The notes below the pieces were generated by a model. That model was not told where the DNA came from and ran no database searches. It worked only from the letters and a program-made list of their open reading frames with translations. Both the position numbers and the translations under genes were made by a program. A stretch of 64,000 bases of DNA from Selaginella moellendorffii (lineage: Eukaryota > Plantae > Lycopodiophyta): contig NW_003314319.1 of NCBI RefSeq assembly GCF_000143415.4, positions 320,115 through 384,114 on the forward strand. The letters are read 5' to 3'. Below, piece after piece: positions 21,343 through 57,268 of this stretch. Numbering within the stretch: position 1 is the first letter of the stretch; each line of letters opens with the position of its first letter.

Positions 21343-21373
<31 letters not shown>

Positions 21374-21950: not shown

Positions 21951-22075
21951 TCCAACATAGAGACCAATGCTAGGAATCTATCCCTTGTATTCCTGGCCAA
22001 CTGGCTAAAAGGGTAATCACTTTATTGTATAGCCCTTTCTTTATCCTATTATCCGAACTTGGTGCCTAACAATAA

Positions 22076-23777: not shown

Positions 23778-23873
23778 CTAGTCTCGCAAAGAGGCCACCT
23801 CAGCATCCTGAGCCTGAGCATGCTCAACCAATTGCCCAAACTCGCTGACCACCTTACTCAAATGATGACAAAA

Positions 23874-24120: not shown

Positions 24121-24134
24121 GAATAAATCCAAAC

Positions 24135-26753: not shown

Positions 26754-29700
26754 TGTGAGACACAAAATCCCTAGGCCCCAAAGTGGAGCCGAAAGGGTGC
26801 CATGTGGTAGTGGCTGAAGCAAAAGCCAAATGAGCGTAACACGTTTGGACTAAAAGGCTCCGACTTGAAAGGTCGAGAGCGGGAGTGGAACTCCCAACAG
26901 AGTGCTCAAGAAACGAGCATGAAGCGAGCAATAAGCGAGGCTCCAAAAAGGGACCCAAAAGGACCAACACATGACACGTGGAAGTGTCCAAGATGGAGTC
27001 TGAGATGGACCTGAGTTGAAGTCCGAGGTGGAGTTCGAGATGGAGTCCGAGATGGAGTCTGAGATGGACCGAGATGGAGTCCGAGATGGAGTCCGAGATG
27101 GACCCGAGATGGAGTCCAAGATGGACCGAGATGGAGTTTGATATGGAGTCCGAGATGGACCCGAGATGGAATCTGAGATGGAGTCCGAGGTCGAGACCGA
27201 GACTGGGACAGAGACCGAGACCAAGACCGGGACAGAGACCGAGACCCAGACCGAGACCGAGACTGAGACCGAGACCGGGACCGAGACCGAGACCGAGGCC
27301 AAGCCCAAGACCGGGCCCGAGCCTGAGCCCGAGCCCGAGCCCGAGCCAGAGTCCGAGTCCGAGTCCGAGTCCGAGTCCAAGTCCGAGTCCGAGTCCGAGT
27401 CCGAGTCTGAGAGGGTGAAAGCCCAAAGCGTTCATCTCCCAGATCCTGGGGGGTTTGGTGAGCTCCAAAAGTATAGTAAGAGGGAGGACTGTAGTGGAGC
27501 CAGTTTGGCCAGGAAAGGCCAGTTTGGCCCAGGAAGGCCAAACCCAGTGTTGGGTGATGAACTGACCACTGGAAAGTCCAAGACTAGAGTGAATACGGAC
27601 CGACAAGCAGGGTAGCTTGGTAAAGTGTTCAAGAGTCGGCTCTAGTTCCCCTGGGAGATCGACTGGCCGATGCTCCCAATCCAAGTGTGGGTGGCACTAC
27701 TTACTTATATACCTAGTGTGGCTCAATGGAACCTCGCTCTAAGCCCATGGCTAGAGCACCTAAAGGCAGAAGGTGGGCTCGCGTAGGGCCACGGTGTTCC
27801 GAAATGTTGTCCCGAAGTCTCAAATGGGGGAAAAGAGGAGGAGTAGTCCTCTAGTATAGTGACTATGAATACGGTCACATGGTGAGGAAGTCCCAGAGGA
27901 CAATGGGACTTAATGGCCAGGCCTACGGGTCTTGATCTAGTGGCAATGTTGGTGAACATGGCCATGGACAGGAAAAAGGACTTGGCAGGAACTGACAAAG
28001 GGATGTTGGGGAAGGCTATTCCTCATGTCTGTGGGCATCCTAAGGATGCTAAGGAGTGGATCTGGGATGACCACTTGTGGACGGACGGCCCAGTCTTGGG
28101 GAGACGGGATTGTGATGCAAGTGGTATTGGACCACCAGTGCGGCAAAGGTGAATGGGCATGGCCTTAGTGTAACGGGCCGATATGTCAGTGGTACCTTTG
28201 GGTGTCAGTCTTAGGACTGGACACGGGGAGCACTTGGACCAAGTGCAAGGGATGAGTGGCATGGATGCCATCCTTGGGACTAGCAAGTCCTAAGTCCTGA
28301 ATTGGACTTAAGGAGGTTATGAATGAGACTCCTCCAAGTGGTCGGAGTTGTGGTTAAGTGACTAAAGTAGAATGGAAAATTTAGTCTCTTACAATTTGGT
28401 ATTAAAGCTGTTCTTTAGTCCGACTTTTATTGGTGCTCAAGTATATCACCACTTGTGTTAGCATCGGAAGGTCCTAGGAGTGGACCTATCCTTGAGGAGT
28501 AGCAAGTCGGGAAGACATGGCTCTCCACTACAATTCAGGTGTGAATTTGTAAGTGAGATGGTGGATAGAAAAGGGCCAATAATAGAACGACTTTGGGATC
28601 TTGGGAACAATATAAGGGTTTCCTTAGAGAGTTAAGGATGTGATCTAGATGAGTGTTTGACGTAACCAACTGGCTAATGTAGTTGTGGTAAACAACTGTA
28701 GTTGGGATCATGTGAAAGATGCGGACTCCAAAAACAATAAATGAGTCACAAGATTACCCTTATATAGTTGAGGTTGGTACTCATAAATTTGAGACCGGAA
28801 TTGGTGACCGTGGGAGGTCAAATACAAAAGAGGACACTAGTCCTTGAAATGGTAGCCAAGGCTACCTTTAATAAATGCTGGAAAAACCTAAGGAGTTGGG
28901 GGTGTACTTAAAGATGAGTTGTTATTCTCATCACATGGACAAGTAGTCTTAAGGGGCAAAAGTTAGCCCCAAAAAAATCATCAAGTGTCTAAGTAACACT
29001 TGCAAAGATTGTCCTTGTGAGTAGGATATGAATACAAGAAGTTGTATTCCAGCGAGTTGGCACCTTGAAAACTAAGACCTCGTAGATTGTTGGATTAGCA
29101 ACATCCAAAATGCTAGATGACTCAAGTGGAGTCAGGGAATGGTCCTAAGGGATTGGTTGAAGCATTTGGACTAAGGTGTATGGTGCCCCATGAGGTATAG
29201 GGAGGATCATAAAATCCAAGTATGAGAACAATAGGTATCTCATTGATGGCAAAATGTGCCATACTAAAGTTATGGGAAAGATGTTCCCAGAAAAAAGCAA
29301 CTTTGGCCCAAAGTTGGGTGCAAACACTATAGTGCGGTGCTAACGAATAGTTAGCATGAGGAACAATATTGGTCTTGGCAAGACCTAAACACTAATAAGT
29401 AGTGTTATAAGGATAGGCTCGTGGGGCCAATAGTGTGGAGACACCAAATGTGCCAAGGTGTGATACCTTGAAGTTATGTTGGTGGGTTCATAAGAACCCC
29501 TTGCCAAAGGGAATCCCAACGGAAATGGGAATGGCATAGCCTAAGCTGGAAGGCATGTGGTAGAGTGTGGTGACCAAAACAATGATGGAAGTGTGGAAGC
29601 ATCAGCAATGAGTTATAGGACTTGACAACTATGAGGCAACAAAGCAAAAGGTGCAAGATAATTTGTTAAATTGGTAGAAGGTAGCTACCCAAGACTTCTT

Positions 29701-32700
29701 AATGGCATAAGGAAGTTAAATATACCCTTATAGAGGATAAATTTGCTTATGTTGCAATATAGTAAGTCAATGTTGAAAAGGGGAATGCTCATTGTCAAAG
29801 AGGCCATCATTGGGACATCCAAACACTCTAGAACACCCGGAGGTGGTGTTTGATGTCGCGAGGGCAATAGATAGGGCCCAAGGGACTAAGTCCCTAGCGA
29901 ATGATGGATAAAAAGTGCTATCCAAATGTCCAAAGTTGCAAAGACAGAAGAAGTCCGTCTATCCAAATCGGATAAAGCCAAAAATGGAATTTTGGCAAAA
30001 TTAGTGATGGGCATATAAAGGCCTATATGTAGCAACGTTAATCCTGGTGTGTGGGATTATAAGGTGAGCATACCTAAATTGAGGAACCACTCCCTAGGCT
30101 GTTGGGTAGGTTCATCCCCAAGAATACTTGCTAAGGCATGGTAGAAAGTGCAAAGTTATCCTCCTAATTTGGACATGAATAACCGAAGGAAATGTATAAT
30201 GCCAAAAGCAAGTAGTAAGGGGATAGAACCAAACCATAGGAATCAAGGAGCATAACCAAAGGTGGTTATGTTAGTTAGGAGTGGAGAATCAAGTGGACGC
30301 TCGAGTATATTATTACTAGCAACCGTGGTGCCATGAAGAGTCTAAAGCATGGAATTGTCCATGCTAGACTATATGGCAATTGGAAAGCTTGCAAAAGGAG
30401 AAGCCTTAGCAAGCTAAGGGACAAAGTTCCTTCAAGTTCCCAAAGACAATTCTAGGTAGCTTAGTACCTAGAAAGGCCAAGTGTAAATGGTTCATAGAGC
30501 GCGCAAAATCAGAGTGGCACAGCAAAAGCGTGGTCTTGAAGCTAACCATGAGGCAAGGCTATCAAGGTTGGGGAAGTAATTCCAGAGTGTTCAAAAAGAG
30601 GGTTTTAAACGAAAGTCGATGGTTAAGGACTTTCACGCTTATGCATGAACCATGTTACGGTGGCCGAATGACTTGTTAAGTGAGATTGGCAAGTCAGAGG
30701 GACAAATCCCCTAGTTGAAGTTGCTAACTTCAAAATGAGTGGCCTATGGGGCCAAGTATGGAGGAGTCCATGCATGATCATAGACTTGTCAAGTGAGAGG
30801 ACTTAGCAATGTGGGGGAACTAGGTTCCTAAGCTGTGATCTATAACGCACTTTGAGTATAAGTTGGTGCACCGGCATGGGGAGTCATGCCAGGCATCTAG
30901 GGTGATGTCGTCCGTAGATGCATATACAGAGGTTGGGTTCGAGTCCCAACCCTCTAGTGCTTGGGTTTGAGTCCCAAATCACTAGGGCATGGTGATGGTT
31001 TGGAATATGAGGACACTCATATTTCGGTGGTCATAGACTCTCAGTGAAGAGATTGGTTTGGGCACACTGCTAAGCGAGGGATGCCTCGGAGTCATGATGC
31101 ACAGTTAGATTGCTTAGAGTGAAAGCTCGGCATATCTAACTTGAACACTTTGGTGCAAAGGGCACCAAGGACGTGGTGAATGAGATGGGGATACCTAGTC
31201 TTAGTTGCTATGGATCCTTGGTTAGAAGGGCTGGCTTGGGCGCACTGCCAAGTGTGGGGGATGCCCCCGAGATCATAGTCAACAATTTAAAAAGGTCTAG
31301 AAGATTTAGTTCCTATTGGTAAACCTATTAAGGGGTCAATATGAGATCATCAGGTGATCTTGTGGCTAAACAAAGATAAGGTCTTTGTTTGGGTTAAGGA
31401 ATATGATTCTCAGTTCAAAGTGTTGATTTGAACTATTGATAATGGTGTGGCTTGGTCGAGGTGACCAAGTGAGAAGGACACCTAAAGGGAAATCAGTTGT
31501 GCCAATACGATGGTATAGTAAGTCCAAGAAAGTAGTCTCGGGGAGAGACCCATGGGAGGGTCGCAAAGTTGGGCCGTGGACGAAGCCCATAGCAGAAATT
31601 GCTAAAGAGACCTACTAGGGGTGAGCACCCGCTGAACTTAGCAAAGTAAAGCCTTTGCCTTGAAACCAAAAGGATATCTCGAGAATGAAGGTAGTGATCC
31701 TATGTTGCTCAGTGCAACAATCAATGGATAAAAGCAAAAGACTAGTGGCCAAGTGTGGGCCATGAAGTTCATTGAAAGGAATCCAAATGGCAAAGTTGAG
31801 CATGGAACACTAATATGTTGGATGCTAACGGATTGTGAGAAAGGAAATGTGCTTCCAAGGATGGATTCCCAAATGCTCCAAGTTGGCAAAGGTGAAAGCT
31901 CCAAGGGAGGGAGTGGCAAAGTAGCTAAAGGATAAGGTTGTGGATAGCTCTAGCACAACTTACGATGGCTGGAACTTGGTGCCAAAAGTGGCATACAATA
32001 GAAAAGAGGACGATGGCGCCCTCAAGTGGGAAGCTTCCTAGGATGGGAAGTGAAGTTGCACAATATGTGTAGTGAAAGGTGTCGAAGACACCAAAGAAAT
32101 TGACTTCGAGAAATCAAAATTAAAAGTTCCAAGGTGAATTTGTCATGTCAATAGAAGTTGGGACTACTTAAGAATGAGTAGTGGAATTGAGTTAGAAAAG
32201 GTGTCTTTAACGGGTTTAACGAGAACTAAACCAATAAAAGGGAGCAAACCACCCCAAGTGGCCGAATGAGTCTTTATGTTAGAGAGACTATGCCCCTTAG
32301 AGGATGGACAAGGCAAGGTGAGCCTTCGGGGTCAAACCATAGACAAATATTGGCTGGGTGCCAAGGATGGAAATGGTAATACCTGCGGGTGTTACTTTAT
32401 AAAAGGGTTTATTGTTCGATGAGGACATCGAACTTCATCTATGGGTGGTGGAGTTGTGAGACACAAAATCCCTAGGCCCCAAAGTGGAGCCGAAAGGGTG
32501 CCACGTGGTAGTGGCCGAAGCAAAAGCCAAACGAGCGTAACACGTTTGGACTAAAAGGCTCCAACTTGAAAGGTCGAAAGCGGGAGTGGAACTCCCAATG
32601 GAGTGCTCAAGGAATGAGCATGAAGCGAGCAATAAGCGAGGCTCCAAAAAGGGATCCAAAAGGACCAACACATGACACGTGGAAGTGTCTGAGATGGACC

Positions 32701-33030
32701 TGAGTTGAAGTCCGAGGTGGAGTTCGAGATGGAGTCCGAGATGGACCCGAAATGGAGTCCGAGATGGACCCGAGATGGAGTCCGAGATGGACCGAGATGG
32801 ACCCGAGATGGAATCCGAGATGTCAGTGGTACCTTTGGGTGTCAGTCTTGGGACTGGACACGGGGAGCACTTGGACCAAGTGCAAGGGATGAGTGGCATG
32901 GATGCCATCCTTGGGACTAGCAAGTCCCAAGTCCTGAATTGGACTTAAGGAGGTTGTGAATGAGACTCCTCCAAGTGGTCGGAGGTGTGGTTAAGTAACT
33001 AAAGTAGAATGGAAAATTTAGTCGTTTACA
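26754..33030 (+). mobile_element. Non-coding LTR element (family D, LARD-like), 5-bp TSD AATGG
   Basis: TSD at 26749-26753 and 33031-33035. 5' LTR 26754-28393. PBS-like TGGTATTAAAGC at 28397-28408. PPT before the 3' LTR 32455-33030, which has an internal deletion of about 1 kb. The ~4 kb interior has no long ORF. Confidence 0.92.
26993..27410. repeat. GATGGAGTCCGA / GACCGA / GCCCGA / GTCCGA arrays in the LTR
   Basis: Directly visible tandem 12-mers grading into three hexamer variants. Confidence 0.9.
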
Positions 33031-33035
33031 AATGG

Positions 33036-34945: not shown

Positions 34946-36074
34946 GGGTTTTAAGTAGCCATTAATCAATAGGAATTGAACTTATGTCATTTTCTTTGAT
35001 ACCACATGTAATGCACCCTATCTCTCTCCCCTTAAACCATAATGAAAAAGCCTTTAGTGGTTATTTTATCCCCATTTATCCTCTAAAGTTTTAAAGATCC
35101 ATAGTGATAGTATATCCAAATCTTATTCCATGATCACATGTGCTACAAATATGTTAACATACTGGAAAGTCCAAATTTCAAAGCTTACAATTTAGCATCT
35201 AAGAAACCTTGAGTTCGACTTTATTAATTAAATACACCATATCACACCATATGTTGATATTAATATTTAATAGTTCAATTCCCTTTAGTTAGGCTCGACC
35301 CAAGGGATAACCTTTGCTCAAGAAAACATGAATTTACATAGAAGCATAGTGGATTATAGCCAACAAAAATGACATTTGGCATTCAAAAGGTCTCAAGTAT
35401 GACTTTATTAATTGGCTAGAGGAATCATACCATATCACACCACATATTGAGATTGACATTTAATAATCTAGTTTCTTCTGGTTGGGTTTTTTTTTTTTTT
35501 TTTTTGAGGGATAACTTCCATTTATGCCTTTTGAAGCATGATGCAATGTAAGCAATTGAGAATGACTCAAAAAAATGGTTTATAAAAGTTTAAATATAGA
35601 AGGAAATGAGCATCTATTTTCCCAAATGGTTAAAGGTCTTCAAATACTTGGAATTAAGCATATTTGGATTTAAATAGTATTAAGTATAGCGGATTGTAAG
35701 TATTAATGTTTATAGCTTTATAAATTAAGAAAAAAAATATTTAGATCTTCACTTCAGAATTTAATTCTAAATAACACTTTAACCTCTAAATTATGAATAG
35801 TTATATTTTTAGTTTTTCACTTTCTATTTTTTAATTTCTAAAACTTTAGTATCTAATAATATTATTTGTGGTGCATAATAGGGTGACAAAATAGGTGAAA
35901 GATATAAGCTCTTTTACACTTCCAACTCCACATGTCAATCACCATTCACTTTGCTATTCTTCCATTCACAATATTGAGGTTGAATCATTGTCTAAAAATA
36001 GATATTCCAATTTTTCATATTCAAAATATGGAGGACAATATCAGCTTTCACAAGTTGAAGACATCCAATTTGTG

Positions 36075-36751
36075 CATTCCAGGTAACTCAAGGCACCTCC
36101 ATCACAGGCGCCAACACAACCCCAGAATCCCCGGGAGGCCAGCGCTTCGACTCTGTCATGGGAGTAGATGGAGCCCTCTCCATCCTCGCCGATGCCATGG
36201 CCTTCGTCCAGCTTGGCTTCGAGTATATGAGCCCCGACACACCCAAGAAGGAGATTGACACCATCCACTTCACAGTGGACGGCATGCCTGGGGTGGCCTA
36301 CGCCATTGGTGTGGAGATCCATCTCAGCGCACAGTTTGTTGCTACTTTCACTGGAGACTTGGTTTTTGAGCTCCGAGGCGTCTTGTACCACGAGATGACT
36401 CACATTTGGCAGTGGTTCGGCAAGGACGGGAGCCGGGCGCCGCAGGGACTGATCGAGGGGATTGCCGACTTTATGAGGCTCAAGGCTAAGCTAGGTGTGT
36501 CGACCAATGGGTTTGTGGGGTCGGGGAGCCACTGGGACGAGGGGTATACCGTGACTGCACTGTTTCTAAACTATGTCAACGATCTCTATCCCAGCTTTGT
36601 GGCAGAGCTTAACAAGAAGCTCTATGACGGGTGGAGTGAAAACTACTTCCAGGATCTGACTGGAAAGAGTGTGGATCAGTTGTGGAGCGATTACAAACTG
36701 AACTTTGTTTATAGATTTTGTCTGAAGAATGGAACCAAATTGTCATTATGA
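36075..36751 (+). pseudogene. 5'-truncated basic secretory protein (BSP/PR-17) copy
   Basis: Nearly identical to 59746-60414 from FQVTQG onward, but lacks the ATG and signal peptide, and a small 3' deletion alters the C-terminus. Confidence 0.85.
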
Positions 36752-37615
36752 AATATACATCAATTAAGAGTCTTAGATAATGGTAAAACTAAATAGCCCT
36801 TTAGCTATTACAACCTAAATTTATAATTAAAGAGTTTATAAAGAGTAAATTATTATAATTGAATACTTTAGATTATTTTTTGGATTGTTTAAGCAAACCT
36901 GTAAGTTATAAATGTATTTATGATTATTGATCATTTAGATTATTCAATAATAGTAAACAGGAATGACACTATTATAACCAAACATTGCTACATGCATAGT
37001 GCAGCTATTAAAAATGCAAAATAATGAGAATTTTAATGGTTTGTTTAATATTCAAGATAATATACTTTAAAACTAAAGCATTAGTGTTAGTAAATAGATT
37101 TTGTATTTGTCTTTGGGCAACTTGCCATGTGGCAATCTTCATTATAATTTTTTTCCTATGCTCTCTCTATTTTATAGTTAGTTAATTATTATTTACTTTT
37201 TGAGTTTCTAATCTTTCATGTAATTTATTATCATGAAGATTATTGTATACTGCTTCTAATCACTTTATCTACCAAAAGAAGTCTTACACTGTATTTAATC
37301 TCACCAAATTAAATAGTAAATATTTGCTAATGATTGTTACAATTTTTTCCTTTTTGATCATATATATTAATATCCATTGCATACAAGAGAATCTCATGGT
37401 CTTTCTTTTGCATGATTATCTGTCTTATTGAGAAATTATCCCATAAAACATCAACTATTGATGGGCTGGTTTGACTTTGCATTTAAAATAATAACTCAAG
37501 TGAGTAATTGCATATAATCTAAAATTTTTAGGCTAATCGGATTATGCGTAGAAGTTTACTATTCATTTCAGCAGCTTGTAGAAGTTTTACTTTTCATTTC
37601 AGCAGCTAACATCTA

Positions 37616-39282
37616 TTAATCAATTAATCTCTTTCGAAGAGTGACACTATAAAACTTTGTTGTTCTAATGGACAAGATCAAGCTCACAATGGATGCAAAC
37701 AAACACACTCCAGCCATTACGAAAAAGGTTGTTCTGTAGCAATGTGGTCCATGGCAAAGGAGCTCATCACCATCCAAACTTCCATTGCTCGGTCCAAGCT
37801 TACTCTCGCAGTCGTATAAAACTCCTGCCACCCGGACGGACAAAACATAAGTTCCCAGAGCCTTAGCGACGTAAGTTACATTTTGGAGCGTCCCATAGAA
37901 CCTGAGCCCGAAGATCTCCGCTATCATGGTGTAAAGAACCGACCACTGGCCACCGATTGACAGCCCAATCAAAACCCAGCCGTAGAAGAGCGCTCCGGGA
38001 AGCCCAAGAGCGATTATCAAGCTCCCAAGCGACAGAAGCAAGAGAACCAGGCACAGGAAGAAGGGCCTTGCGACGCCATAGCTGGCGAGGCATATGTCCG
38101 AGATGAAGCCAACGCCAACGCCACCGTTGAAGTCCCAGATGCTAAGGAGGGCGATGAAAGTGTTTGTTCCGGCCTGGGAGTAGCCAAGGGACGTTCCAAT
38201 CTGGCCGAAATTGTTGGTCACGGTTAGCACAGCGCCAATGCCACAGGTTGAAGCCACGAAGATGAGAAACATGTCGATGCTACAGAGCGCCTGGAGGATT
38301 GTGAAATCGTCTCCTCGCTTGACGGGCGATCCTTTAAAGAAGAAGATCGAAATGTGCGAGGCGATGGCTGGAGCAGCGGCGTCTGCCCCATGATCCGGAG
38401 GATCTACGTCTTGATAATCTGTTTGAGGAGTTTCTATCGCTGCGTTCTCCACTAGATCAACATCAACTTCTTCGCGAAGGCGATGCCGGAGGGTTTTGGA
38501 TTCCTGTCTCAGAACCACAAGAACTGGGATGGAGAGAATGATCAGCATAATGGAAAAGAAGGCCTTGATGATCCGAGACTCTAGGCGCACGAAGTGCTGG
38601 AGGATGATATAGCCATGAGATATCCAGCCAGGATCAAAGTTACTGACAAGAAGACGAAGAGCGTTCTCGAGTCATTGTAGCGACCGTCGAGTGGGACGGA
38701 TCGAATGGAAAACGCGAAGAGAAGGCACAAGAGTGATGGAAACCAGGCCAGCAAGAGAACGAATGAATCGTCATTGCGAGAGAAAAAGGCCTGGTAAAGC
38801 AGCGTGAACATCGCAACGCTCAATCCCTGCGTACTGTCGAGAAGACTAAGAACCATGCCCTGGTTCTTGGGGAAATTCTTGGCACAGGCCACAAGAACAG
38901 CGGTGGTGGTGAAGGCTGCCGATGCGCCGATCATAAAGAGATAGAAGCACAGTTCCCAGACATGGGGTTGTGCTATTCTCTGCGTTGTAGCCAGCCATAT
39001 CGTGAAGTATCCAGCAAAGTTTAGCGCGAATCCAAGGAGGAGCACGACCCAGGGCCCGGTGAGATCATAGAGGAGGCCGGAGAGAATCCCGACGCTGGTG
39101 CCAACGTCCTTAAATAAGCTTATGGTGTTGATATTTTTTTGGTTGTAGTCGAGGGACAGCTTGAGATGCTGCGAGAAGAGGCTGAAGTTGTTGAGTGCTC
39201 CTCCCGTGGAGATCATGAGGAAGAAACTTGCCAATGCAACCATCCATTGACTGTTGTAGAGGTGTTTGATCGTCCCAACCAT
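37616..39282 (-). pseudogene. Nodulin-like MFS transporter (NFD4-like), frameshifted near 38610
   Basis: Two overlapping ORFs (233 aa + 324 aa) with FKDVGTSVGILSG, AKNFPKNQGMV, RGDDFTILQAL, EIFGLRFYGTL and CHGPHCY. Confidence 0.88.
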
Positions 39283-39811
39283 GATCCTAAGCTAAACTTT
39301 AGATTGAAATAAGAGTGGAGAGCATATATATTTAAAGGAAGAAATTCAAATCGAAAGAGAACATATTCACTGTCTTAGTTTTTCTACCCGGCTCTTTCAG
39401 AAAGAAATTGTGTCCAAGCAGCGCACAACAAGGACTGAAGACCAGGAAGATCTGCAAGATGTAGCTCTAATTTTCAATCGTGGCATTCTTGCATCCATCA
39501 GTCTCATGCTTACAACTATCTATTTATGTTATTTCGGTAATCTTGTGACTGATGGATGTAGAAAATCGAAGCCGCGATGTCGGCTCCCTCCTTCGCTGCT
39601 GCTGCCGGCTTCGTCGCTTACTATCCAGAGTCTCGAAAAAGAAAAGACGTGATGTTTTAAGGAATTGAGGCGATGGCCAGGTGGGCTGCCACCTAGAAAG
39701 AAGGTCTTTCGCGGCCACCAACTTGGACTTTAACATCATGAAAAATCAACTATATAAACCCACCAATTCTATGCAACCTCATTCATCTTGTTTCCTCCTA
39801 ATTTTGTAGCT

Positions 39812-41036
39812 ATGCCTTCCTTTGTTGCAAATGTCAATCAGCAGACTGATGTTCTTCCAAAGGGTGTCAAAGCTCTCATGGATAATGGCCTCGTTACCAT
39901 TCCTGGCCGTTATATCAAACCTCCCAGCCACCGAGCTGTGAAGCATTTGATCGTTCCTGGAGTGGAGATCCCTGTGATTGACATGGCTGCATTGGAGAGT
40001 GACCGAGAGAAATTTGTTCAAACTTTGTGCAAGGCTTCGAGTGAATGGGGCATCTTTCAGGTATTTTGATGTGTACCTGCTCAAAAGGATCATTCATAAT
40101 ATGATGTCACATGCAGGTGATCAACCACGGGATTCCTGTTGCAACCATGCAAGGCATGGTCCATGGAGTGCTTGAGCTCTTTGATCTTCCTATTGAGGAG
40201 AAGATGAAGTATTATACGGAGGAGGTGTTTGTGCCCGTGCGGTACTGCACGAGTATGACACCTTCTCAAGAGACTCATATGGAGTGGCACGACCACTTTC
40301 AGCACTACTTTTCAAACAGAGAAAAAGAGCATCCATGGCCGGAAAAACCAGCCTGCTACAAGTAAATGAGCTTGACTAATCTGGATTTCATGAGATTGCT
40401 TGGTTTCTTGGATATTGCAGGAGGCTCGCTTCCAGCTATGTTTCAAGCGTGAGACATCTGAGTCAGACTCTGATGTCTGCTTTGTCTGAAGGACTCGGGC
40501 TGGATTCAAACTGCCTCGCGAAATCGTTTGGAGACTCGGAGATGATCTTGCGATCAAATTACTATCCGCTGTGCCCAAATCCCGACCTTGCTCTTGGGAT
40601 GAATGGCCACACCGATAGTGGCGGTTTGACAATCCTGTTTGAAGATCAAGTTGGCGGACTCCAGGCCAGGAAAGGTGATCTCTGGTACGACTTGAAGCCT
40701 ATAAAGAATGCATTCATTGTGAACATCGCTGATCAGCTTGAAGTAAGTGACTTGGATTGATTTTTATCATGGCTTTGTTCTTTTCCATGCCAGATTTTGA
40801 GCAATGGAAAATACAAGAGCATTGAGCACCGAGTCCTTGTCCAGCCTGATCAAACTCGTCTCTCCATCGTGGCATTTTGCAATCCATCACGGGATGCTGT
40901 GATAGGACCCCTGCCAGAACTTATTGATGAGCAAAACCCGCCACTCTACAAGTCAACCTTATACCAAGAGCACATCACAAATGTCTACACAAAATATTTG
41001 GATGGCAAGCATTCACAAAAGCTCCAAATAAACTAA
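39812..41036 (+). CDS. 2-oxoglutarate/Fe(II)-dependent dioxygenase (DOXC class), 4 exons
   Basis: Exons 39812-40060, 40117-40361, 40421-40742, 40794-41036. Motifs IPVID, WGIFQVINHG, NYYPLCP, HTD, SNGKYKSIEHR and RLS are intact. Confidence 0.93.
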
Positions 41037-41459
41037 ACCAACGAGCTGTTAACTAAATAAAATAATACAAATAATAAATCTTCTCGCCATCCCCCTGTCA
41101 AGGCAGCTCAGTTTCGCAAGATCTGATCCAGGGTCGAGCTCCTTGCCTTATTTTATAAGAGAGAACTGTCTCCAAAGATCTCTACAAAGGCAGGATGCTC
41201 CACAGCTCCATTCTTGCTTCGCCGTTGCTAAGTTCATTTAGTGCTCATGTACGTGGAACTGCAGCAGGCCTGGAGATCTTCAATATCTACTAGCTTGAAA
41301 GATCTATTGTGTTCCTAAACTCTCCAGGCCGAGACACCCCATTATCACGTCGAAGACCCTTCAAGCATCCGTGAAGCTTTGCAATCATGGATCAGTGATG
41401 CATGGAAGAGGTCCTAGCTCTAGAGGCCCTGGAAGCGCCAAAGTGAAGCAAGTCCAAGA

Positions 41460-41713
41460 GTGCATTGGTGGACAGGTTCACGGCCGAGGCAACCCAGCTG
41501 CGAATCAACAGTCATGGACAGTGCACTAGTCGTCTATATGAATTGCTTGGCATCATTTGGCCACCTCATCTCACTGAATCTCAGCACCAATTCACTCTCT
41601 GGCACAATCCTTAGATTGCTGGGTGATATTCCAATGCTATGGACGACCTTGAATCTTGATGCTCAACTAAATCTGCAAGATCATTAACAAGGAGATTCCA
41701 AAATCTCTAGAGA
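41460..41713 (+). pseudogene. Plant extracellular LRR gene fragment
   Basis: LISLNLSTNSLSGTI..LG; no complete gene. Confidence 0.7.
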
Positions 41714-42535
41714 ATCTCACAATCAAACTTGCCTAAAGCATTGGCCCACCAACCTTATTTCCCTCTTAAGTCGGGTTGTGATAACAAGTGTTTCATTGCC
41801 ATATTATTCGTGTAAACTTTGAAGTGTCTCCCAAGGTAATGTCACCACTCCTTGAGTGTTTTGATCACCGCAAATAATTTCTTCTCATGGGTAGGCCACT
41901 TTTGCTAAGCTTTCTTCAACTTCTTTGAGAAGAACATTATCTTGCTTCAAAACTGTGCCTAACGCAAAGTTTGAAGTATCCATTTCTACCTCAAAGTCTT
42001 TACCAAAGTTTAGTAATGCCAACACAGGAGCCTTCCTCAACTTCTTTTGAGATGGATAAATGCCACCTCGCTGTCCATACCATTTTCCCTTTTCCTGTTT
42101 AGTCCATTAAAGGTAGGGGTATTTTTAAATAGTGTTTGAAAACTTTCAGTAGTAGTTACATAACCCTAACAATGCTCTTAATTTGTGTACATTCAATAGT
42201 TATTCCCATTCCTAGATCGCTTAGACCTTTTCAAGATCCACCTTGAGCCCATCTTTGCTTACCACATGCCCAAGAAACTTTACCTCTTATTGAGAAAAGT
42301 TATATTTGTTCGTTTTAATATATAGTTGGTGTTCTTTTAATTTCTCAAACACCTTCGTCAAGTGTTCAACATGCTCTTCTAGCGTCTCGCTATAAATCAA
42401 GATATCTGTCAATGTAGATGACCACAAAATGCTTTAGGTAAAGTACAAAAATGTGGTTCATCAATGCCGAGAACGTTCCTAGTGCATTGCACAGCTTAAA
42501 GGGCATCATTAGAAACTCAAAACTTCCATTCTAAA
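41714..42535 (-). mobile_element. Decayed gypsy RT/RNase H fragment
   Basis: Minus strand reads FEFLMMPFKLCNALGTF, VVIYID.., KFLGHVVSK, FEVEMDTSNFALGTVL and THEKKLFAVIKTLKEW. Homologous to 49205-49460. Confidence 0.85.
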
Positions 42536-43279
42536 TCTAAAATCGTATGTGTCAAATGATGTGTAAACTTTCTCAAAGCTAGAGGTGCAAGTAGTAGCAG
42601 TGAAGGACCTTTCAGACAGACTCCACGTCTGGGAGCCATAGTGACGGACCATGACAGCATTGCTGGCTTAAGTGTTCCCATCAACACCATGCCCATGATG
42701 GTGTTTATCAGGTGAATCTCCCACTGTTTGTATGCGTTCTATATATGCTTTTGTTTATACAGGTCTGTGTTTCGTGCTTTGAGGGAGAGTGAGTGTGCCC
42801 GTGTACTCGGGCTGTTCCCGTACCTCCAAGTTTGGCACAACCTCAGCATGAGCCAGGCTACACCATGTGCAATCGATGGATCTGATGAACCTCCGCGCCC
42901 AAAACCAAAACACTAATTGCGTATATGGTGTGGTATTAATTCCATAAGGAAACGTGTGAAGTTAATAAGTATATAAGCTGTCCTAGATAAATTTCCTTGA
43001 TTATTCCTTGGTCACGCTCTCTCCAAAAAATCAAATCATCAAAACGAACCTGGAAATTTGGTTGCAGATAAAAATAATGGAAACTCTGTATGTGAATCGC
43101 TGTGGAGAATTCGACAATGCAGCATGTCAGGTGGCTACGCTCAGAGCAAGCAAGTTACGGAAAATGTAGACTGCAAATGCAATGCTGGCAGCATACGAAC
43201 CATGCTGGCTTGTAACCTCTTCCTAGACCATTCTCATGCTATGCCCTGGCTGAAGCTGTATTAATCTTCCAAGGGAAGG

Positions 43280-44180
43280 GATGCTATGGTCTTTGTGCGC
43301 CTGTTGCAGCCGCCTGAGAAACCTTCCAAAGTATGACAGCCGACATCCACATTCAACCGAATTAGTTCTGCATGGTCGATCTGTTCGGTACAACACGACT
43401 TCTGTTTGTTCCCAAAGGATATCTATGCCTGGGAGATCCTACCCGCCTCCTGTACAAACATGCTGGCCCAGCACTAATATGTACGTGATGCTCGAGAAGC
43501 AGAAGCCAAATGTGCTCACTGCTGCTGCTGTAATATCTGTCTCAGTGCATTTACAATATGAGGAACCGTTGCCGGACCCGGCTGCACCCATGCTCGTTTT
43601 TAACTGTGCCATTTGAAGCTGAAACGCCTTCTTTCCCAACCGGGTTAAGCAATCCGGCGGTTCTATCCGCAAAAATCTTAGGTGTGCCGCCAGCTGCAGT
43701 GCCCTGGAACAAGATCAGGAGAGAGATTTTATAGGGTATTGACATGGTTAAATGGGGAGCTGGAACACCATAGCCTCAATTGAGATTCTTCAGTATGGAT
43801 TGACAATGCACCAGATGCTCCATTCCTTTGTTCAGCACTAGCTGTCACAGCTCTGTGGATCCGGCTGGCTCGAGAACGCCTTTCTTGGCCTTTGCCCCAC
43901 GAACCGGTTCGAAATTGCTGCGAACATAGAGATGCCAAGCGACTCTCAGGCGTCTTGATCCTGGAGAAAATCGAAAGTCAAGTTACAAACATATGCAAAC
44001 AATTGGATGAAATCGAACCTCAGCCCAGACGCTGCTGCATTCGGCTTTTCAAATAAACTGTATCTCTTTTAGTTCTGGCAAGGCCGAGACCAGCAGCCGG
44101 CTCTCCGGAACGAATATCCGAATGAGAACGAGAAGCCTGCCATCCCTAGGGCTTAACGAGCAGACTTGTAAATCTCGAAT
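43280..44180 (-). other. Possible spliced gene remnant of unknown product
   Basis: GT..polypyrimidine-CAG intron-like segment (~43961-44018) and short GC-balanced ORFs. No recognisable domain. Confidence 0.25.
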
Positions 44181-44884
44181 ATGGCGGATCCAGGTAGCTG
44201 CATTTGGCTTCGTGCTGCTGGAAGCGGCTGTGCTGTGTCCAATGCTGGGTGCCTTCGTGTCCTGCCCAAAGGGTCACCGTTTCAAGATCTGCGCTTCATG
44301 CGGGCAACAAAATAAGGCTGGTCTTGTCTCCCACGAGCTCACTCTACTGGTATGTGCTTCAATTATCTGCATTTCTCGTGGACTTGAGTGTAAAGCTCCT
44401 CAGGATTCGTCTGATTGTAGGATCTTTGCTGCTCATGGAGCTTGCTGTGCTGGTGCAACTATGGGTGACCATCAAGCAAGAAAAGAGACAGCACTTTTCA
44501 GTGAAGCTGGAATCGATGCCGCAATTCTGGTGAATGCTTCCAGCTTGCTTCCTTTGTTCTTCTTAAAAGAGCGTCCAGGGTGCATGGATGCAGAAGGACC
44601 GGACCCAGCGATCAGTCAACTGACAAGTCTCAAGGACATCCTGGTATTGAAATAGAAGACGATATGACTTGTTTCGTCTTGTTGCACTGTGTTGAAAGAT
44701 CACGCTGACTTGACGCTGTTTGCAGATCCAGCAAACTTACGGCCCCATAGCACTAAATTCAAGAGAGACCTGGATGCTCGTGCAAAAGAAGAAGAGGAAC
44801 TCTTCTACGTACGTTGGAACTCAGGCGTTCTCATACCGGGTATGTCAGGATTGCTTCGCTTATCTTCTCTTTTCCGCTTGTTTT

Positions 44885-47001
44885 CTAAATCACGAGTCCG
44901 CTTAACAGCTCGGTTCCCAATCTCAACTTGCCGAGGCTTCTGCAAGCCGCCAGCACGGCCCTCCACACCACAGCATCGCCCTCCACTGGAGAGCTTACCA
45001 CGAAACGTACCATCTCCTCAAACTTCCCGGCTCGCCCTAGAAGATCGACCATGCACACGTAGTACTTCGCAGCGGGGGCGATCCCATAGTTGCTCCTCAT
45101 CGACACAAAGCTGCAGTGAGCGTCCTAGAGCCCGGCGTGGCTACACGCCGAGAGGACGCTGACGAAGTTGATGGAGTTTGGCATGGTGTCGGATCCCATT
45201 TGCATCACTCGGAAGAGCGTGAGAGCTCGCACCGCGTGGCCGTGGCGATCGTAGGCTCCCACCATTGCACTCCAGGTTATCACGTCTTCTCTTCGCAGCT
45301 GGAAGAACAGCGTCCAGGCTCCCGTATTTGCTGTAGAGATTGAGCACTGCGTTGCCGAGTAGAACGTCCAGCTCCACTCCCCTCTCGCAAATCCAGCCGT
45401 GGACTCGCTTGCCATCTTTCAAGGAGGAGATCTCCGTGCAGGCAATGATAGCGTTTACGGAAGTGTGGTTGTTCATCCGGAATCCTTCTAACTGCATGTG
45501 TGAATCGAGTACGATTTTTCCATGCTGGTACTGTACGTAGATCGTGATCAAGGCTTTCCACGACGTCGCATCCTTGTGAGAGATCTTGGCGAAGGCTTCT
45601 CGTGCATCAAGCAAGCTCCCACACTTTGCAAACATGTTGACGAGCGCGTTCCCCACGATCTTGTTAGAGGAGTCATAGCCGGACTCCACGGTGAATCTGT
45701 CGGCCCCCGCGCAGAAACGCCGGGGACGAGCACGCATTGAGCGCCGCCAGGAGAGTTACGTTGTTCGGCCTCACGCTCTCTAGCTGCATGCGCCAAAGAA
45801 ACACCATCCCCTGCAGTCCTTTTCCATTGCCTTGCTCCGCGAGAGCTGCAATGATCGACGACCAGGCGACTGCGTCTGGACAATCCATGCTCTGGAAAAC
45901 TCTCCTCGATTCAAATGCGCTGCCACACCTCCCGGGAATACATGGTTATCAGCGTGTTTCCTACAAATGGGACGCTCTGGAAGCCACACTCTTCGATCAA
46001 ACCGTGGACAAAACATCCAGCCTTGAGGACGCCGCAAGCCTCTAAAACCGCCACGAAAGCTCATCTGGCTCGACACCATTGAGCAGCATCAGACAAAAAC
46101 ACTCGAGGGAAGACCTCGTTTCCTCGTGTTCTACGTAAGCGCTGATCATGGCAGACCATGCAAACTTGTTCTTGCAGCTCATCCGCTCAAAAATCTCTCG
46201 CGCTTCCGCAAGGCTGCCACACTTTGCATACATATGAACAAGGCTCGTTCCGGCTGTGACGTCCGTCTCATGGAGAACATCCTCCGGAAGACAAGAGTGA
46301 ATGAGTCTGCCGGTCTTCAGGAACATTGGGCCGCAGCAAGCCTTGAGGAGTGTAACGAATCCGATTTTTCCAATCTTGACGCCCTCGAGCTGCATGACAA
46401 AGAGCATTTTCACTGCATCCGACTGATGCCCATTTTGGGCATATGCTGAAACAATGGCGTTCCAAGACCCTGTGTTTCGGAAATACATTCTATCTAAGAA
46501 AGCTCTGGCTTGGTCGATTTGGCTGCATTTTCCATACATGTTGATAATCTCATTTGAGATTATCACATTCTTCTCCAGCCCACGATCCGCTATTATTTTG
46601 TGTACCACAATGCCCCCTGCGAGAGCGCCGTGTGTGGGGCAAAGATTGAGCGCTGGCAAGAGGGCGGTTTGATCCGGGAGAATTCCCTGCTCCTCCATCT
46701 CGTTCAGCAGGCCAACAGCCCCTCCGATTGATCCACATGAGCCGTGAGCCGTGATGAGCGCGCTCCACGAGAGAGAGCTCCTCTTACTCGCGTCAAGGCT
46801 TTGGAACACAGCCTTGGCATCGTCCAAATGCCCGCACTTGCCATACATGTCGATGAGGTGATTCGCGAGACGCCCATCCCTTTCAAGGCGGCCCAGACGG
46901 GAGATATGGGCGTGGAGCTTCCTACCACCATCGACCAATCGCAGGGATGTGCAGGTGAGGAGGAGATGGATGAGCTCTTCCGGCTCCAGGCGATCTGGCA
47001 A
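44885..47001 (-). pseudogene. PLS-class PPR pseudogene (several frameshifts and stops)
   Basis: Fragments NHLIDMYGKCGHLDDA, SLVHMYAKCGSLAEA, NALVNMFAKCGSL, FVSVLSACSHAGL and YVCMVDLLGRAG..VWRAVLAAC occur in different frames. Confidence 0.9.
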
Positions 47002-47429
47002 AGATTAAGGGCATACGAAAACAAAGAAGAGAAAGAAAAGGAATGTAGAGAGTATCAATCCTAGTGCCTCTCGCATGCTAATTGAGCGCTCTAGTAGACT
47101 TGGTGGTGAGATTTTCTCTTTGTCCCGAAAGTTTTCTCTCGCATCCTTGGAATCCTTCCATCTTTGCGATTTCTCTCTCCTTTTGCGATTTGTTTCTAAA
47201 ACTTTCTTTTTTGCAGGTGCCACCCTTTGTTTTTCTCATCGTTTTGATTAACAATGGGGTCTACCTTTAGGAAAGATGCCGGAAAAATAAAGTAAATAAC
47301 TGTTTTATCATCTGTCTTATTGAGAAACTATCCCAGGAAACATAGACAATTATTCAATGGGCGAGTTTGACTCTACATTTGAAATAATAACTCAAATGAT
47401 ATAAGGAGGAAATGAAAAACATAAAGAAA

Positions 47430-47461
47430 ATGGCAATTTTTCTCCTCATTATCCTAGCAAC
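47430..47461 (+). pseudogene. Orphan 5' end of the BSP gene (MAIFLLIILAT) with its upstream region
   Basis: atggcaatttttctcctcattatcctagcaac is identical to the reverse complement of 60383-60414. Confidence 0.9.
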
Positions 47462-48240
47462 GGAAGAAACTGTGTCAGGCAGGGAGACTTGAACAAAGAA
47501 AAGTTTTGCTTCTTTCAGTCGGCCATTTTGGTTGTAGACATTGAGCATAATGTTGCATGATCTGGTGTCAGGGTTCAGGATAGAGGCAAAGATCTCCAAG
47601 ACCTGCTGCAGTTCCTTGTGAGCCCCATACCTAAGCACCAGGAAGTTGCAATGGCACAGATTGGAAACAAGCATGGAGCTGTGGAGCCTGCTGCCCTCCT
47701 GGCACATGCCTTGAGACGGTGTCCCAGTTTCTCCACAGATCCATTGCACCATGGGCTCTTGCTGGAGCTGCCATATTGTGGTGAGAATCTTTCTGAATCC
47801 TTCAACAATCATATGATAATATATTCTGGTATATGTTCCAAGATACTAGGGTTCTCTCAGGCATGGATTTCCAAGCAGCCATTCGTCCCAAATGCCACGA
47901 GCTCTACATTCCATGAGATGACACAGTGTTTTGGACCTGCAAGACTTGAGCGAGGTGCCCCGCTTGAGAAAACCCTGAAAGTAGTGAGTTCCATGAAAAT
48001 GGATCCGCATCAAAGCATGTTCATTTCTTCAACGTATCCAAGTTGGGCATTTGCTGCAACAATAGCATTCCAGGAGATGATATTGCAGAAAGGCATTTTC
48101 TAGAACATGATATTCACAGGATTAATGGAGCTGTTTTGTGCACCAGATGACATCAAAGCAGTCCAAGAGATCATGTTTCTTTTGATCAAACATAAACTTT
48201 GTGTGATCAACACATTGTTTTGACCATAGGTTGACATTGC
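47462..48240 (-). pseudogene. Decayed PPR fragment
   Basis: DTRSCNIMLNVYNQNGRLKEAKLFF..PDTVS and ISWNAIVAANAQLGYVEE. Confidence 0.75.
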
Positions 48241-48255
48241 GATGTTCCACAACAC

Positions 48256-49203
48256 TTTAAGTGATTAATTTTTCCATTCTATTTTAGTCATTTAATTACA
48301 TTTCTGACGATTTAAAGGAGTCTTATTGACAATGTCTATAAATCCAATTTAGGACTTAAGATTTGCTAGCCTTGAGAATAACATCTATGCCACTCAACTT
48401 TTGCATTTGATCCAAATGCTCCATATGTTTGATCCCATGATTAACACCCAAAGGTATCACTAATATATTAATCTGTTACACTAAGGCCATGCCTATTCAC
48501 CTTTGCCGCATTGGTGGTCCAATACCCCTTGCATCTTAGTCCTATTTTTCCAAGATTGGTTATCCATCCATGAGTGGTTCTCCCAAATCCACTCTTCAAC
48601 ATCCTTAAGATGCCCACAAATATAAGGAACAACCTTCCCCAATATCCTTTTTTAGTCCCCACCATGTCCCTTTCTGTCTATGCCCGTGTTTGCCAACATT
48701 GCCACTAAATCAAGGCTTACAAGCTTGACCATTAAGTCCCACTATCGTTTAGGACTTCCTCACCATGTGGCCATATCTTTAGTCAGTACCCTAAAGGATT
48801 ACTCCTCTTCCTTTCCACAATTTAGGACTTTATGACAACATTTTGGAATACTATGGCCCTATATGAGCCTCATAGGTACTCTCCCCACCTTTTGCATTTG
48901 GGTGCTCTAGCCATGGGTTTAAAGTGAAGTTCCGTTGAGCCATGTTAGGTATCCAAGTAAGTAGTGCCACCCATGCTTGGATTGGGAGCATCGACTATTT
49001 GATCTCTTAGGGGAACTAAAGCCAACTCTCGAACACTTCACCAAACTACCTTGCTTGTTGGTTTGTATTCACTTTAGTCTTGAACTTCCTAGTGGTTATT
49101 TTATCACCCAACACCTAGGTACAGCCTTCTTAGGCCAAATTGACTCTACTAAGGTCCACCACTAAGGTACAACCCCCACACTCTCCCTACTATACTTTTG
49201 GTG
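48256..49203 (-). mobile_element. Truncated, older family D LTR
   Basis: Collinear with 20259-21205 but with many C>T and G>A changes. Confidence 0.85.
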
Positions 49204-52150
49204 ATGAGATGTTTTAAACTTTGTGTTGGGCACAATTTTGAAGCAAGATTAGCATTCTTCTCGAAGAAGTTGGACAAAACTCAGCAAAAGTGGCTTGCCC
49301 ACGAGAAGGAATTGTTTGTGGTGATTAAGGCACTCAAGGAGTGGTGACGCTACCTTAAGAGACACTTCAAAATTTACACAGATAATATGGCAATGAAACA
49401 CTTGTTAACACAGCCCAACATGAGAGAGAAACAAGGTCAGTGGGCTAATGCTTTGGCCGAGTTTGATTGCAAGATTTTGTATAAATCTAGGAAAAACAAC
49501 ATTGTGGTAGATGCTCTAAGTTGAAAAGTGAGCTTGAAGTTAGTGATATCCAGCATGATAAAAACCTTTTGGAATGATGTGCAAACAGCGTATGAGAACG
49601 ATGGTCTAGCACAAGAAGTGTTGTTGAGGAACCAAGAGGCACGGGAAGCTCACTAAAGAGGTGAGTTGCCAACGGAAGAGAAAACAGGCTATGCAAAATG
49701 CAATGGACTCATCTATTATAAACAAATGAAAATATATGTTCTAAAAGGGGAACTAAGGAAGGTAGCCTTAGAAGAATGTCATAATGGACTTCTTGTGGGA
49801 CACGACAAAGTGCCCGAGACGATGGGCTTATTCAAGAGGAAGTATCACTGGCCAGATATAGCTAAGGACGTCCAAGATTAATCGTCCATGGAAATGTTTT
49901 ATGATAGACTTCATCATAAGACTCTCCCCAAATTAGGGGTTTGATGCAATATTTGTGGTGGTGGACCAATTTTCAAAGATGGCACATTTCATACCCATTA
50001 CAATTGAAGTGGATGCAAAAGGTGTGGTGAAGTTGTTCTTCGAATAAGTGGTTCAAGTGTGGGGAAGGCCAAAAGAGATTATCTCAAATTGAGATAAGAT
50101 CTTCACTAATAGGTTCTAAAGAACTCTCTTAGAATAACATCGCACCAAATTGAAATTTAGCACAACTTATCACCCATAGACAGGTATTAGGTATTAAGTC
50201 AAGTTTGATGGCACTAACACTTCTTGACAGATGGACAAACAAAAAGGGTGAATAGGCAGTTGGAGGATTATTTATGATGCTATATCTCCAGAGATTAGAC
50301 TGATTAGGTAAGTCATTTAGGACTTGTGGAAATGTGCTATAAAACACACCACACTCGAGTATTAGGGTGAGTCTATAGGAAGTCATCAATGGGCGAGCTA
50401 TTGAAGGTCCTGTGGAACTCAATGTGACCGAGTATCATGGGGAGTCACCCACAGTGGAGGCATTCATGGCAGAAAGACTCAACATTTAGAATCTAGTGAA
50501 GGATTCCTTGGAACAAGCTCAACAAAGGCAAACCAAATATACAAACCAAAAGCATCGAGATGTAAAGTTCTAACTTGGGGAGAAGGTGTGATTTAACACC
50601 AAGAACTTAAGGCTACCAAGTGGGATTGATTGAAAGCTAACTCAAAGGTAAAAATGCATGTATTCCTGGAAATTAACTGATCTTGAGTTCCTTAAGCAAG
50701 TTTGTGAGACTTTACAAGATTGAGGCACAAATTGATAAGGTGGCTTACTATATTTAACTTCCTCGAGAGATGAGGAAGATGCACTCTATGTTCCATGTGA
50801 ACTTACTCAAGCTGTATTTTGAGGATTTGCTTCGCAAGGACCAAATAAAACTTTTACTTAAGGTTATCCAAGGGGAAAAGGAATACAAAATCAAAGCCAT
50901 CCTCAATGCACACAAGAGCAAGTAACAAAGATGTGAGGTGAGGGAGTTCCATGTGAAGTGGAAAGGATTTCCACATTGCAAAACAACATGGGAATTAAAG
51001 GAAAACTTAGTGAACGTGTGGGATCTAGTAAATGAATTTTTGCAAGGTAGAACTCTATATACTTATGCAAAATTCAATTAAAGAATCTATTTAAGAAATT
51101 GAGCAATGTCATATGTTAGGACCCGAAGGGGCGCCAAAGATAAGCTAATTAGCATGGGTTAACTAGGTCAACCAAGCATAAAAAACTACGCTCAACTCCC
51201 CACGGGGATGTTAAATCCATAGACTATTCTATGGAAGTTGGGTTCAAGTCCCAACCCTCTAGTAAAGCAAAGCTAGGTTCAAGTCCCAACCCTATACTAG
51301 GGTGTAGTGAGGGGAGGGGGTATAGAGACACCTATATTCCGTTGTCATGGGCTATTGGCTGGAAAGGCTAACTTAGGCACACCAATGTCCCCGAAAACAT
51401 GGTACAAGTCATAGGATTAAAAAGAGGTGTTTGATGTGGGCATTGAACTTCTTTTATGGGTGATGGAGTTGTAAGGAACCAATTCCCCAAGGTGTTGAAA
51501 GCTAAAGGATCCCTGAAAATATGACTAAAATGATAAAAAGTTTATCAAATGAGACTAAGTCTAAGATCGAGTCCAAGACCAACTCTAAAACCGAGTTTGA
51601 GACTGAGTCCAAGATCAAGTATAAGACCGAGTCTGAGACCAAGTTTGAGACCGAGTCCAAGACCAACTCTAAGACCAAGTTTGAGACTGTGTCCAAGATC
51701 AAGTATGAGACCGAGTCTGAGACCAAGTTTGAGACTGAGTCCAAGACTGAGTTTGAGACCGAGTCCGAGATCCGAGATCGGATCTAAGACCGAGTCCCAG
51801 ATCGAGTTCGAGACACGAGATAGAGTCCAAGGTCAGGTCCAAGATTGAGTCCGAGATCGAGTCTGAGACTGAGTCTAAGACCAAGTCTAAATACTAATAT
51901 AGGTCATAGGGTGAAAGCCCAAAGCATGTGTCTCCCGGGGGGGGGGATAGTCTACAGGGATAGTAGGGATATAATAGGGATAGTGAGGTTTAGGAACTAG
52001 TCTTGAAGAAACTCTCTAGTGGTGCTTTCAAATTAATTTGAGGTTGAGATTAGGCTGAAGGGCTTTGGGTGGGAGTGAGCATGGACTCAAGTGGTGCCAG
52101 AGGGGCCACCCAAAGAAATGCTCAAGAGCGGCTCCTGCTCCTAAAAAGGG
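49204..52150 (+). mobile_element. Decayed chromovirus (gypsy) 3' half: RNase H, integrase, chromodomain, PPT, family B LTR from 51470
   Basis: [66 protein letters not shown]. The LTR start TGTAAGGAACC matches the 15259 terminus. Confidence 0.85.
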
Positions 52151-54773: not shown

Positions 54774-55091
54774 CTAAGCAAAATCTTGAGAAACAAAAAG
54801 CGACAGGCTAGTTTTGAGGAAGTAGATGGCAGTGACCTCTCCAGAGATTTTGGAATCTCCTTGTTGAAGATCTTGCAGATTTAGTTGAGCATCAAGATTC
54901 AAGGTCGTCCATAGCATTGGAATATCACCCAGCGATCCAGGGATTGTGCCAGAGAGTGAATTGGTGCTGAGATTCAGTGAGATGAGGTGGCCAAGTGATG
55001 CCAAGCAATTCATATAGACGACTAGTGCACTGTCCATGACTGTTGATTCGCGGCTGGGTTGCCTCGGCCGTGGACCTGTCCACCAATGCAC
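54774..55091 (-). pseudogene. LRR gene fragment (less decayed copy)
   Basis: LGHLISLNLSTNSLSGTIPGSLGDI. Confidence 0.7.
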
Positions 55092-55514
55092 TCTTGGACT
55101 TGCTTCACTTTGGCGCTTCCAGGGCCTCTAGAGCTAGGACCTCTTCCATGCATCACTGATCCATGATTGCAAAGCTTCACGGATGCTTGAAGGGTCTTTG
55201 AAGTGATAATGGGGTGTCTCGGCCTGGAGAGTTTAGGAACACAATAGATCTTTCAAGCTAGTAGATATTGAAGATCTCCAGGCCTGCTGCAGTTCCACGT
55301 ACATGAGCACTAAATGAACTTAGCAACGGCGAAGCAAGAATGGAGCTGTGGAGCATCCTGCCTTTGTAGAGATCTTTGGAGACGGTTCTCTCTTATAAAA
55401 TAAGGCAAGGAGCTCGACCCTGGATCAGATCTTGCGAAACTGAGCTGCCTTGACAGGGGGATGGCGAGAAGATTTATTATTTGTATTATTTTATTTAGTT
55501 AACAGCTCGTTGGT

Positions 55515-56739: not shown

Positions 56740-57268
56740 AGCTACAAAATTAGGAGGAAACAAGATGAACGAGGTTGCATAGAATTGGTGGGTTTATATA
56801 GTTGATTTTTCATGATGTTAAAGTCCAAGTTGGTGGCCGCGAAAGACCTTCTTTCTAGGTGGCAGCCCACCTGGCCATCGCCTCAATTCCTTAAAACATC
56901 ACGTCTTTTCTTTTTCGAGACTCTGGATAGTAAGCGACGAAGCCGGCAGCAGCAGCGAAGGAGGGAGCCGACATCGCGGCTTCGATTTTCTACATCCATC
57001 AGTCACAAGATTACCGAAATAACATAAATAGATAGTTGTAAGCATGAGACTGATGGATGCAAGAATGCCACGATTGAAAATTAGAGCTACATCTTGCAGA
57101 TCTTCCTGGTCTTCAGTCCTTGTTGTGCGCTGCTTGGACACAATTTCTTTCTGAAAGAGCCGGGTAGAAAAACTAAGACAGTGAATATGTTCTCTTTCGA
57201 TTTGAATTTCTTCCTTTAAATATATATGCTCTCCACTCTTATTTCAATCTAAAGTTTAGCTTAGGATC

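Follow-up and report, generated by a model that had tools for sequence, protein, structure and literature searches.

A circularly permuted gene copy in Selaginella moellendorffii, opened at one duplicated base, as the probable footprint of a re-integrated DNA circle

How do the two parts of one gene come to stand at the opposite ends of a block of repeated DNA, with the promoter at the downstream end? The question is raised by a 64,000-nucleotide stretch of the Selaginella moellendorffii genome (the window; scaffold GL377623.1 of assembly GCA_000143415.2, window position 1 being scaffold position 320115), in which one copy of a BSP gene (PF04450) is broken at a single base. A sequence-only reading had taken the surrounding block for an inverted duplicate in permuted order, left by a DNA circle that was opened inside BSP and inserted near its donor. 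Here the window was compared with loci fetched around related proteins (L001–L008, of which L001 and L005 add 18 kb past the window end); the whole analysis rests on one Sanger-era assembly of a heterozygous plant. The scaffold of the window holds further copies of the repeated unit, in L002 and L007, plus a partial copy; others are found on GL377588.1 (L003, L006 and L008) and on GL377674.1 (L004), and at the locus the copies occur in both orientations. GL377588.1 is the allelic scaffold (L008 1–7311 against window 5591–12884, 94% identity), L007 pairing with L003 and L002 with L006. L002 lies 52 kb upstream of the broken copy, in the same orientation.

The permuted copy, referred to as the left copy, occupies positions 36075–47461 (window coordinates, plus strand unless stated otherwise; those beyond 64000 belong to the extended sequence). 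Its 11,387 bp, close to the 11.4 kb first estimated for the circle, comprise block A (5639 bp), a gypsy-derived piece, G (816 bp), a 4-bp filler and block B (4928 bp). By self-BLAST, left A (36075–41713) matches the reverse complement of 54838–60383, and left B (43823–47461) that of 60383–64000, which confirms the duplication in the order A-B against B-A: the two blocks keep the same orientation relative to each other, and their order is flipped with respect to the unrotated copies. The base-level comparison of the junctions bears out that the first base of A and the last base of B are one and the same C, in codon 11 of BSP, and this one-base overlap is seen against L001, L002, L004 and L006 alike. 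At the upstream junction, J1 (36074–36075, TTTGTG/CATTCC), the flank runs directly into codon 11 of a 5′-truncated BSP gene (36075–36751), annotated as the 215-aa protein P0002, which has neither promoter nor the first 10 codons and whose stop is taken out by a 14-bp deletion at 36698. At the other end of the copy, an ATG at 47430, preceded by the promoter region, opens the 32-nt start of the gene (47430–47461; 10 codons plus 2 nt), which ends on the duplicated C at junction J3 (47461–47465, CAAC/GGAA). The block order is truly rotated, the left copy being a circular permutation whose opening point is a single duplicated C in the BSP gene. No record of the left open reading frame was found in other assemblies.

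If the copy is a permutation, its closing join should be found inside it. The sequence-only reading placed this join at 41713/41714, where A meets G, a decayed reverse transcriptase/RNaseH fragment (41714–42529, minus strand) absent from the inverted paralog on the right. The A/G join is older, however, and it is common to L002 and L006, which continue past it into the rest of the gypsy element; the new join is therefore the one between G and B at 42529/42534 (J2, 42529–42534). At J2 the gypsy end, the filler TCTA (42530–42533) and the start of B follow one another with no homology between the joined ends, and the junction is found in the rotated copy alone among the fetched copies. The earlier closure point had led to the prediction that the reverse complement of 43822 back to 41714 would continue past position 64000; this held for 1289 of the 2109 bp, as far as 42534 (extended 65280–65281), and failed for the remainder.

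The whole span in unrotated, non-tandem order and with the same A/G join exists only in L002 and L006, and the left copy corresponds to a rotation of L002 5233–16381 (11,149 bp) or of its allele L006 5298–16410. The right arm, proposed as the donor in the sequence-only reading, does not qualify, as neither the 816-bp gypsy piece of the circle nor the BSP 3′ region in its ancestral form is present in it. In block B, the left copy and the right arm share 30 derived sites with L002 (FastTree support 0.96). A T>A change at 42541, outside the converted tract described below, is common to the left copy and L002 only and is not present in the right arm. Upstream of B, in a block U common to L001, L002, L004 and L006, the right arm has no quartet site in common with L002 over 1836 columns, compared with 20 over 2835 columns of B. 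Over the BSP 3′ region the left copy groups with L002 and L006 (10 shared sites), the three forming a star at 1.2–1.7%, and the right arm is ~4% away. One source in the L002/L006 lineage would account for the left copy.

The right arm itself (54791–64000, minus strand; B extending to 65280–65281 and U to 69435) is an inverted paralog containing B, an intact BSP gene, A and the LRR end without the gypsy join. The gene (59746–60414, minus strand; 222 aa, PF04450) spans the B/A join at C 60383. Its relation to the left copy is not that of a uniform duplicate. There are no differences over 4290 bp in B (42841–47130, a tract that carries a broken minus-strand PPR gene) or over 2364 bp in A (37417–39780); these tracts sum to 6654 bp, and 57 derived sites plus a frameshift in an MFS gene are common to both arms. 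Outside them the arms differ at 16 sites in 298 bp next to J2, at 12 sites in 565 bp next to G and at 38 sites in ~710 aligned bp of the BSP 3′ region. Block A is a mosaic and no uniform copy of the right arm: a stretch at 36501–37416 escaped homogenisation, the left copy differs strongly there from 36520 on, and it is the right arm that stands apart from the other copies. Extrapolation from the unconverted stretch would put ~45 private changes into the identical tracts, which hold none; this indicates that the tracts were homogenised later. We infer conversion between the inverted arms, with its direction, as the cause; read collapse is less likely. The B sequence next to J2 (42534–42840), which also holds the L002-specific change at 42541, has 13 changes private to the left copy, 12 of them C>T or G>A, with 9 of 18 CpGs altered, compared with 6 of 13 in G. 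The private changes of its own that J2 carries show it to be old and the homogenisation of the arms to be more recent. The pattern of these changes suggests a spread of methylation out of G into B once J2 had arisen, in which case the age of J2 may be close to that of the split from L002/L006. The near-identity of the two arms is secondary and not a trace of the duplication.

A further question is whether the site that received the copy can be recognised in the other haplotype. The left flank (35703–36074) matches the allele at L008 12300–12571, in reverse, and the match stops exactly at 36074, its last 92 bp being identical, which supports J1 as a true breakpoint. Past this point the allele reads GAAAAGC and enters a different piece of 144 bp, which has no match elsewhere in the fetched DNA, and the sequence from 36075 to ~69840 (34 kb) is missing from the allelic scaffold. 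The right flank starts with GGAA, followed by PPR homology from 47466, and at most these 4 bp agree with the allele; they may represent a duplicated G followed by 3 bp left over from the allelic continuation, or may match by chance. The allele keeps the left flank up to 36074 and does not run into 47462. At its other end the allele has an inverted piece beside the third MFS copy and looks derived there, so a deletion may account for the missing 34-kb block. In the allele, the join at 36074 falls inside a 59-codon open frame (L008 12156–12389), and for a gene across it no homologue was found in Pfam or among 1.84 billion representatives, which gives no support to the join being an old coding sequence.

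A circular intermediate opened in BSP is still the most economical reading of these data, although neither the closure point nor the donor first assigned to it has stood. We consider it probable that a circle from the L002 lineage was re-integrated here and later underwent gene conversion with the neighbouring paralog. An 11.2–11.4-kb B-BSP-A-G segment of the L002/L006 locus would have become a circle, perhaps free or replicative, by non-homologous joining of the gypsy remnant to the start of B at J2 with the 4-bp filler. The circle would have been opened in BSP codon 11, with duplication of one base, and joined into a break at 36074, while to the right of this break the acceptor would have lost sequence. 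This would have placed the new copy 7.4 kb from the older inverted paralog, and later recombination between the inverted arms would have homogenised two tracts of 4.3 and at least 2.4 kb. The reciprocal ends with their one-base overlap, and the absence of homology together with the short filler at J2, speak for such a circle.

Several observations weigh against it. The allelic scaffold holds no clean empty site, so that every model has to assume that DNA was deleted from the acceptor on its right. The locus is prone to inversion, at least two inversions separating the haplotypes: a large one, from about window 12884 to extended 74401 relative to L008, and a small one at L008 11759–12155. The direct donor evidence at J2 is one base, 8 bp from the junction. 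In addition, A and G lean slightly to L006 and not to L002 (3 sites, or 12 against 2 with a distant outgroup), and U also leans to L006 (8 sites, mostly in one 200-bp cluster); this lean may be blurred by recombination between the alleles or by a switch of phase in the assembly. Because shared sites cluster in tracts, Fisher tests on them make such groupings look more significant than they are.

The presence of an inverted paralog next door opens a route without any circle, which the sequence-only reading overlooked: reciprocal one-base breakpoints also result when an inversion through BSP is combined with a homologous crossover within B. Two direct units would have been fused at J2, by deletion or by a half-homologous template switch, after which an inversion would have broken the first BSP and the flank, making the breakpoints reciprocal automatically and turning the B blocks into inverted repeats, between which a crossover would flip the middle. 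Undoing the crossover (45000/62823) and one inversion (J1–J3) in silico restores U-B-BSP-A-G/B-BSP-A, with BSP rejoined and the flanks adjacent, and the number of new junctions is three, the same as with a circle. The 6654 identical bp show that the arms have recombined, inversions are frequent at the locus, and both the paralog next door and the lean of U, A and G to L006 are explained. The scheme requires, however, one more unit of the gypsy type, or else a template switch no farther than ~0.8 kb from J2. Under it the right-arm U should be of the same type as left B or A-G, whereas U shares no L002 site, and J2-proximal B should be of the right-arm type, whereas 42541 is L002-type in the left copy only. 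A variant with the flip through A is disfavoured, as near J1 the A sequence of the left copy groups with the gypsy-type copies, unlike that of the right arm. No tandem copy of J2 is on record: the search for additional array copies did reveal more units, but among the annotated BSP and MFS cluster members J2 occurs in no head-to-tail pair with whole BSP genes, as a plain tandem array with deletions would have it. On this evidence we regard the route without a circle as rather unlikely.

One replicative event by microhomology-mediated break-induced replication or fork stalling and template switching (MMBIR/FoSTeS) could have copied A-G, B and further pieces into a break at 36074 through several template switches, with no closed circle, and would thereby have made much of the 34-kb block that the allele lacks. 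It would suit the missing 36075 to ~69840 block, which starts at J1, the filler-bearing junctions without homology and the right flank, a patchwork of nearby pieces. In the absence of a circular template, nothing would put the third switch on the very base where the first began, and the block may have been deleted from an allele that looks derived at its other end; we therefore rate this event as improbable. An assembly artefact, in which repeats of a heterozygous plant were collapsed or chimerically joined in a Sanger assembly, is very improbable. The 6.65 kb of perfect identity in a single assembly could represent read collapse, which could touch the identity tracts and not the junctions; there is no N in the window, a junction overlap of 0–1 bp leaves no repeat to mis-join, J2 has its own gradient of private changes and the match to an independent allelic scaffold ends exactly at J1. 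Capture by a transposon (Pack-MULE, CACTA, Helitron or long terminal repeat (LTR) transduction) finds no terminal repeats around the junctions, and the ends lie inside the BSP coding sequence. Two separate in-place inversions of A-G and B in a once-intact copy would yield the same block order and shared breakpoint, but they predict the gypsy continuation as left flank and reversed U as right flank, whereas neither flank matches those sequences in L001, L002, L004 or L006; the flanks rule these inversions out.

The re-integrated circle has close parallels in human segmental duplication pairs mediated by circular DNA (Chicote et al. 2020, PMC7450558; Takahashi and Innan 2020, PMC7188851). As in these pairs, the order A-B/C-D becomes B-A/D-C and gives two parallel lines in a dot-plot, the closing join is non-homologous with few inserted bases, one base is duplicated at the opening and one breakpoint lies in a repeat element. 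Of the features by which Chicote et al. (2020) recognise such events, the flipped order, single opening point, non-homologous closure and unrotated ancestral locus are present. On the other hand, the spikemoss copy is of 11 kb, against 22–3918 kb in the human pairs, and its acceptor is not clean, whereas the human cases have only 1–27 bp indels. The spikemoss locus is also a low-copy-repeat cluster in which an adjacent inverted paralog later overwrote parts, and this opens the route without a circle, for which there was no need in those papers. The permuted insertions cited in PMC7450558 (cattle KIT colour-sidedness, the tilapia vasa duplication and the wine-yeast five-ORF cluster, where ORF is open reading frame) are read there as inherited, re-integrated circles. 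As far as that account of them goes, they are serial or multi-site and some have a phenotype, unlike the spikemoss case, which is one insertion of mostly dead gene copies with no known phenotype. Extrachromosomal circular DNA of plants includes gene-bearing or chimeric circles (the EPSPS replicon, transposable-element circles; PMC12722694, PMC10462705, PMC12975422), and in these plant papers chromosomal re-integration is cited for yeast, cattle and cancer, not for plants. No base-resolved plant case of circle re-integration was found in the literature searched, which is limited evidence of absence.

Inversion and non-allelic homologous recombination between inverted low-copy repeats also generate reciprocal breakpoints, flip isomers and conversion tracts. 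Unlike in those systems, a prior fused direct pair would be required here, and none was found. The rearrangement is real, of a known kind of mechanism and in a new taxon; if the circle is true, this is a fixed, base-resolved footprint in a lycophyte, and it would extend to plants the return of non-transposon DNA circles to heritable chromosomes, a route described in yeast, fish, cattle and humans. Because the moved genes are mostly dead copies, no new function is implied. Two warnings of method follow from the locus: beside an inverted paralog, a single inversion followed by a homologous crossover can leave the signature of a circle, and conversion at a later time can make the wrong copy look like the donor. 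A bolder proposal, possible but on the doubtful side, is that S. moellendorffii repeatedly re-integrates gene-bearing DNA circles into its heritable genome and that these contribute to its low-copy repeat clusters. In the present case both circle and target would have been cut with a one-base stagger (the C in BSP and the G in the flank), and the new copy would have overwritten its neighbour, spreading the dead MFS and PPR alleles.

Regarding the other genes of the left copy, block A contains a Nodulin-like/NFD4 MFS transporter gene (37616–39282, minus strand), located within the 37417–39780 identity tract and frameshifted as in the right arm, and a 2OG-Fe(II) dioxygenase copy (39812–41417), the counterpart of a right-arm gene call. 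The motif YYPLCP in the latter and an extra stop in the LRR fragment are confined to the left copy, as had been noticed from the sequence. The one-base MFS frameshift (38581–38590 and 57961–57970) is not found in six other copies, which encode 555–556 aa, and the dead allele was probably spread by conversion. Only the two arms carry a 64-bp insertion (41085–41148, within the dioxygenase copy, and 55403–55466), for which the fetched loci offer no source. The right-arm BSP 3′ region (59234–59936) differs by ~4%, with many indels, from every other fetched copy, while the sequence around it is almost the same as in the left copy. U and the start of B are bridged by the unannotated call of a 655-aa gene (L001 3934–7754, from extended position 66481), so that J2 truncates this gene in the left copy.

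The right flank (47466–48256, minus strand) consists of two decayed PPR-gene pieces, which also adjoin other unit copies. A second permutation in this flank was considered and dropped, its third piece being only 72% alike and inside a transposon. A second copy of the BSP promoter motif, 83% identical, lies downstream of BSP in every unit (37415–37503, 47307–47399 and 59048–59133), and is probably left over from an earlier tandem array of BSP genes; a cluster of BSP genes is present in L003. In L002 only, 68 bp of the BSP promoter (L002 9927–9994) stand in inverted orientation. Elsewhere in the window there are nested gypsy elements (20254–33031 and 48258–52146), whose LTRs contain purine-rich tandem arrays of 6/12 bp, and at least four related LTR pieces in both orientations. 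Finally, the DNA polymerase alpha gene at 1–5320 has a partial copy, 95–98% identical, 130 kb upstream (L007 3280–7159), which is joined to block A of another unit.

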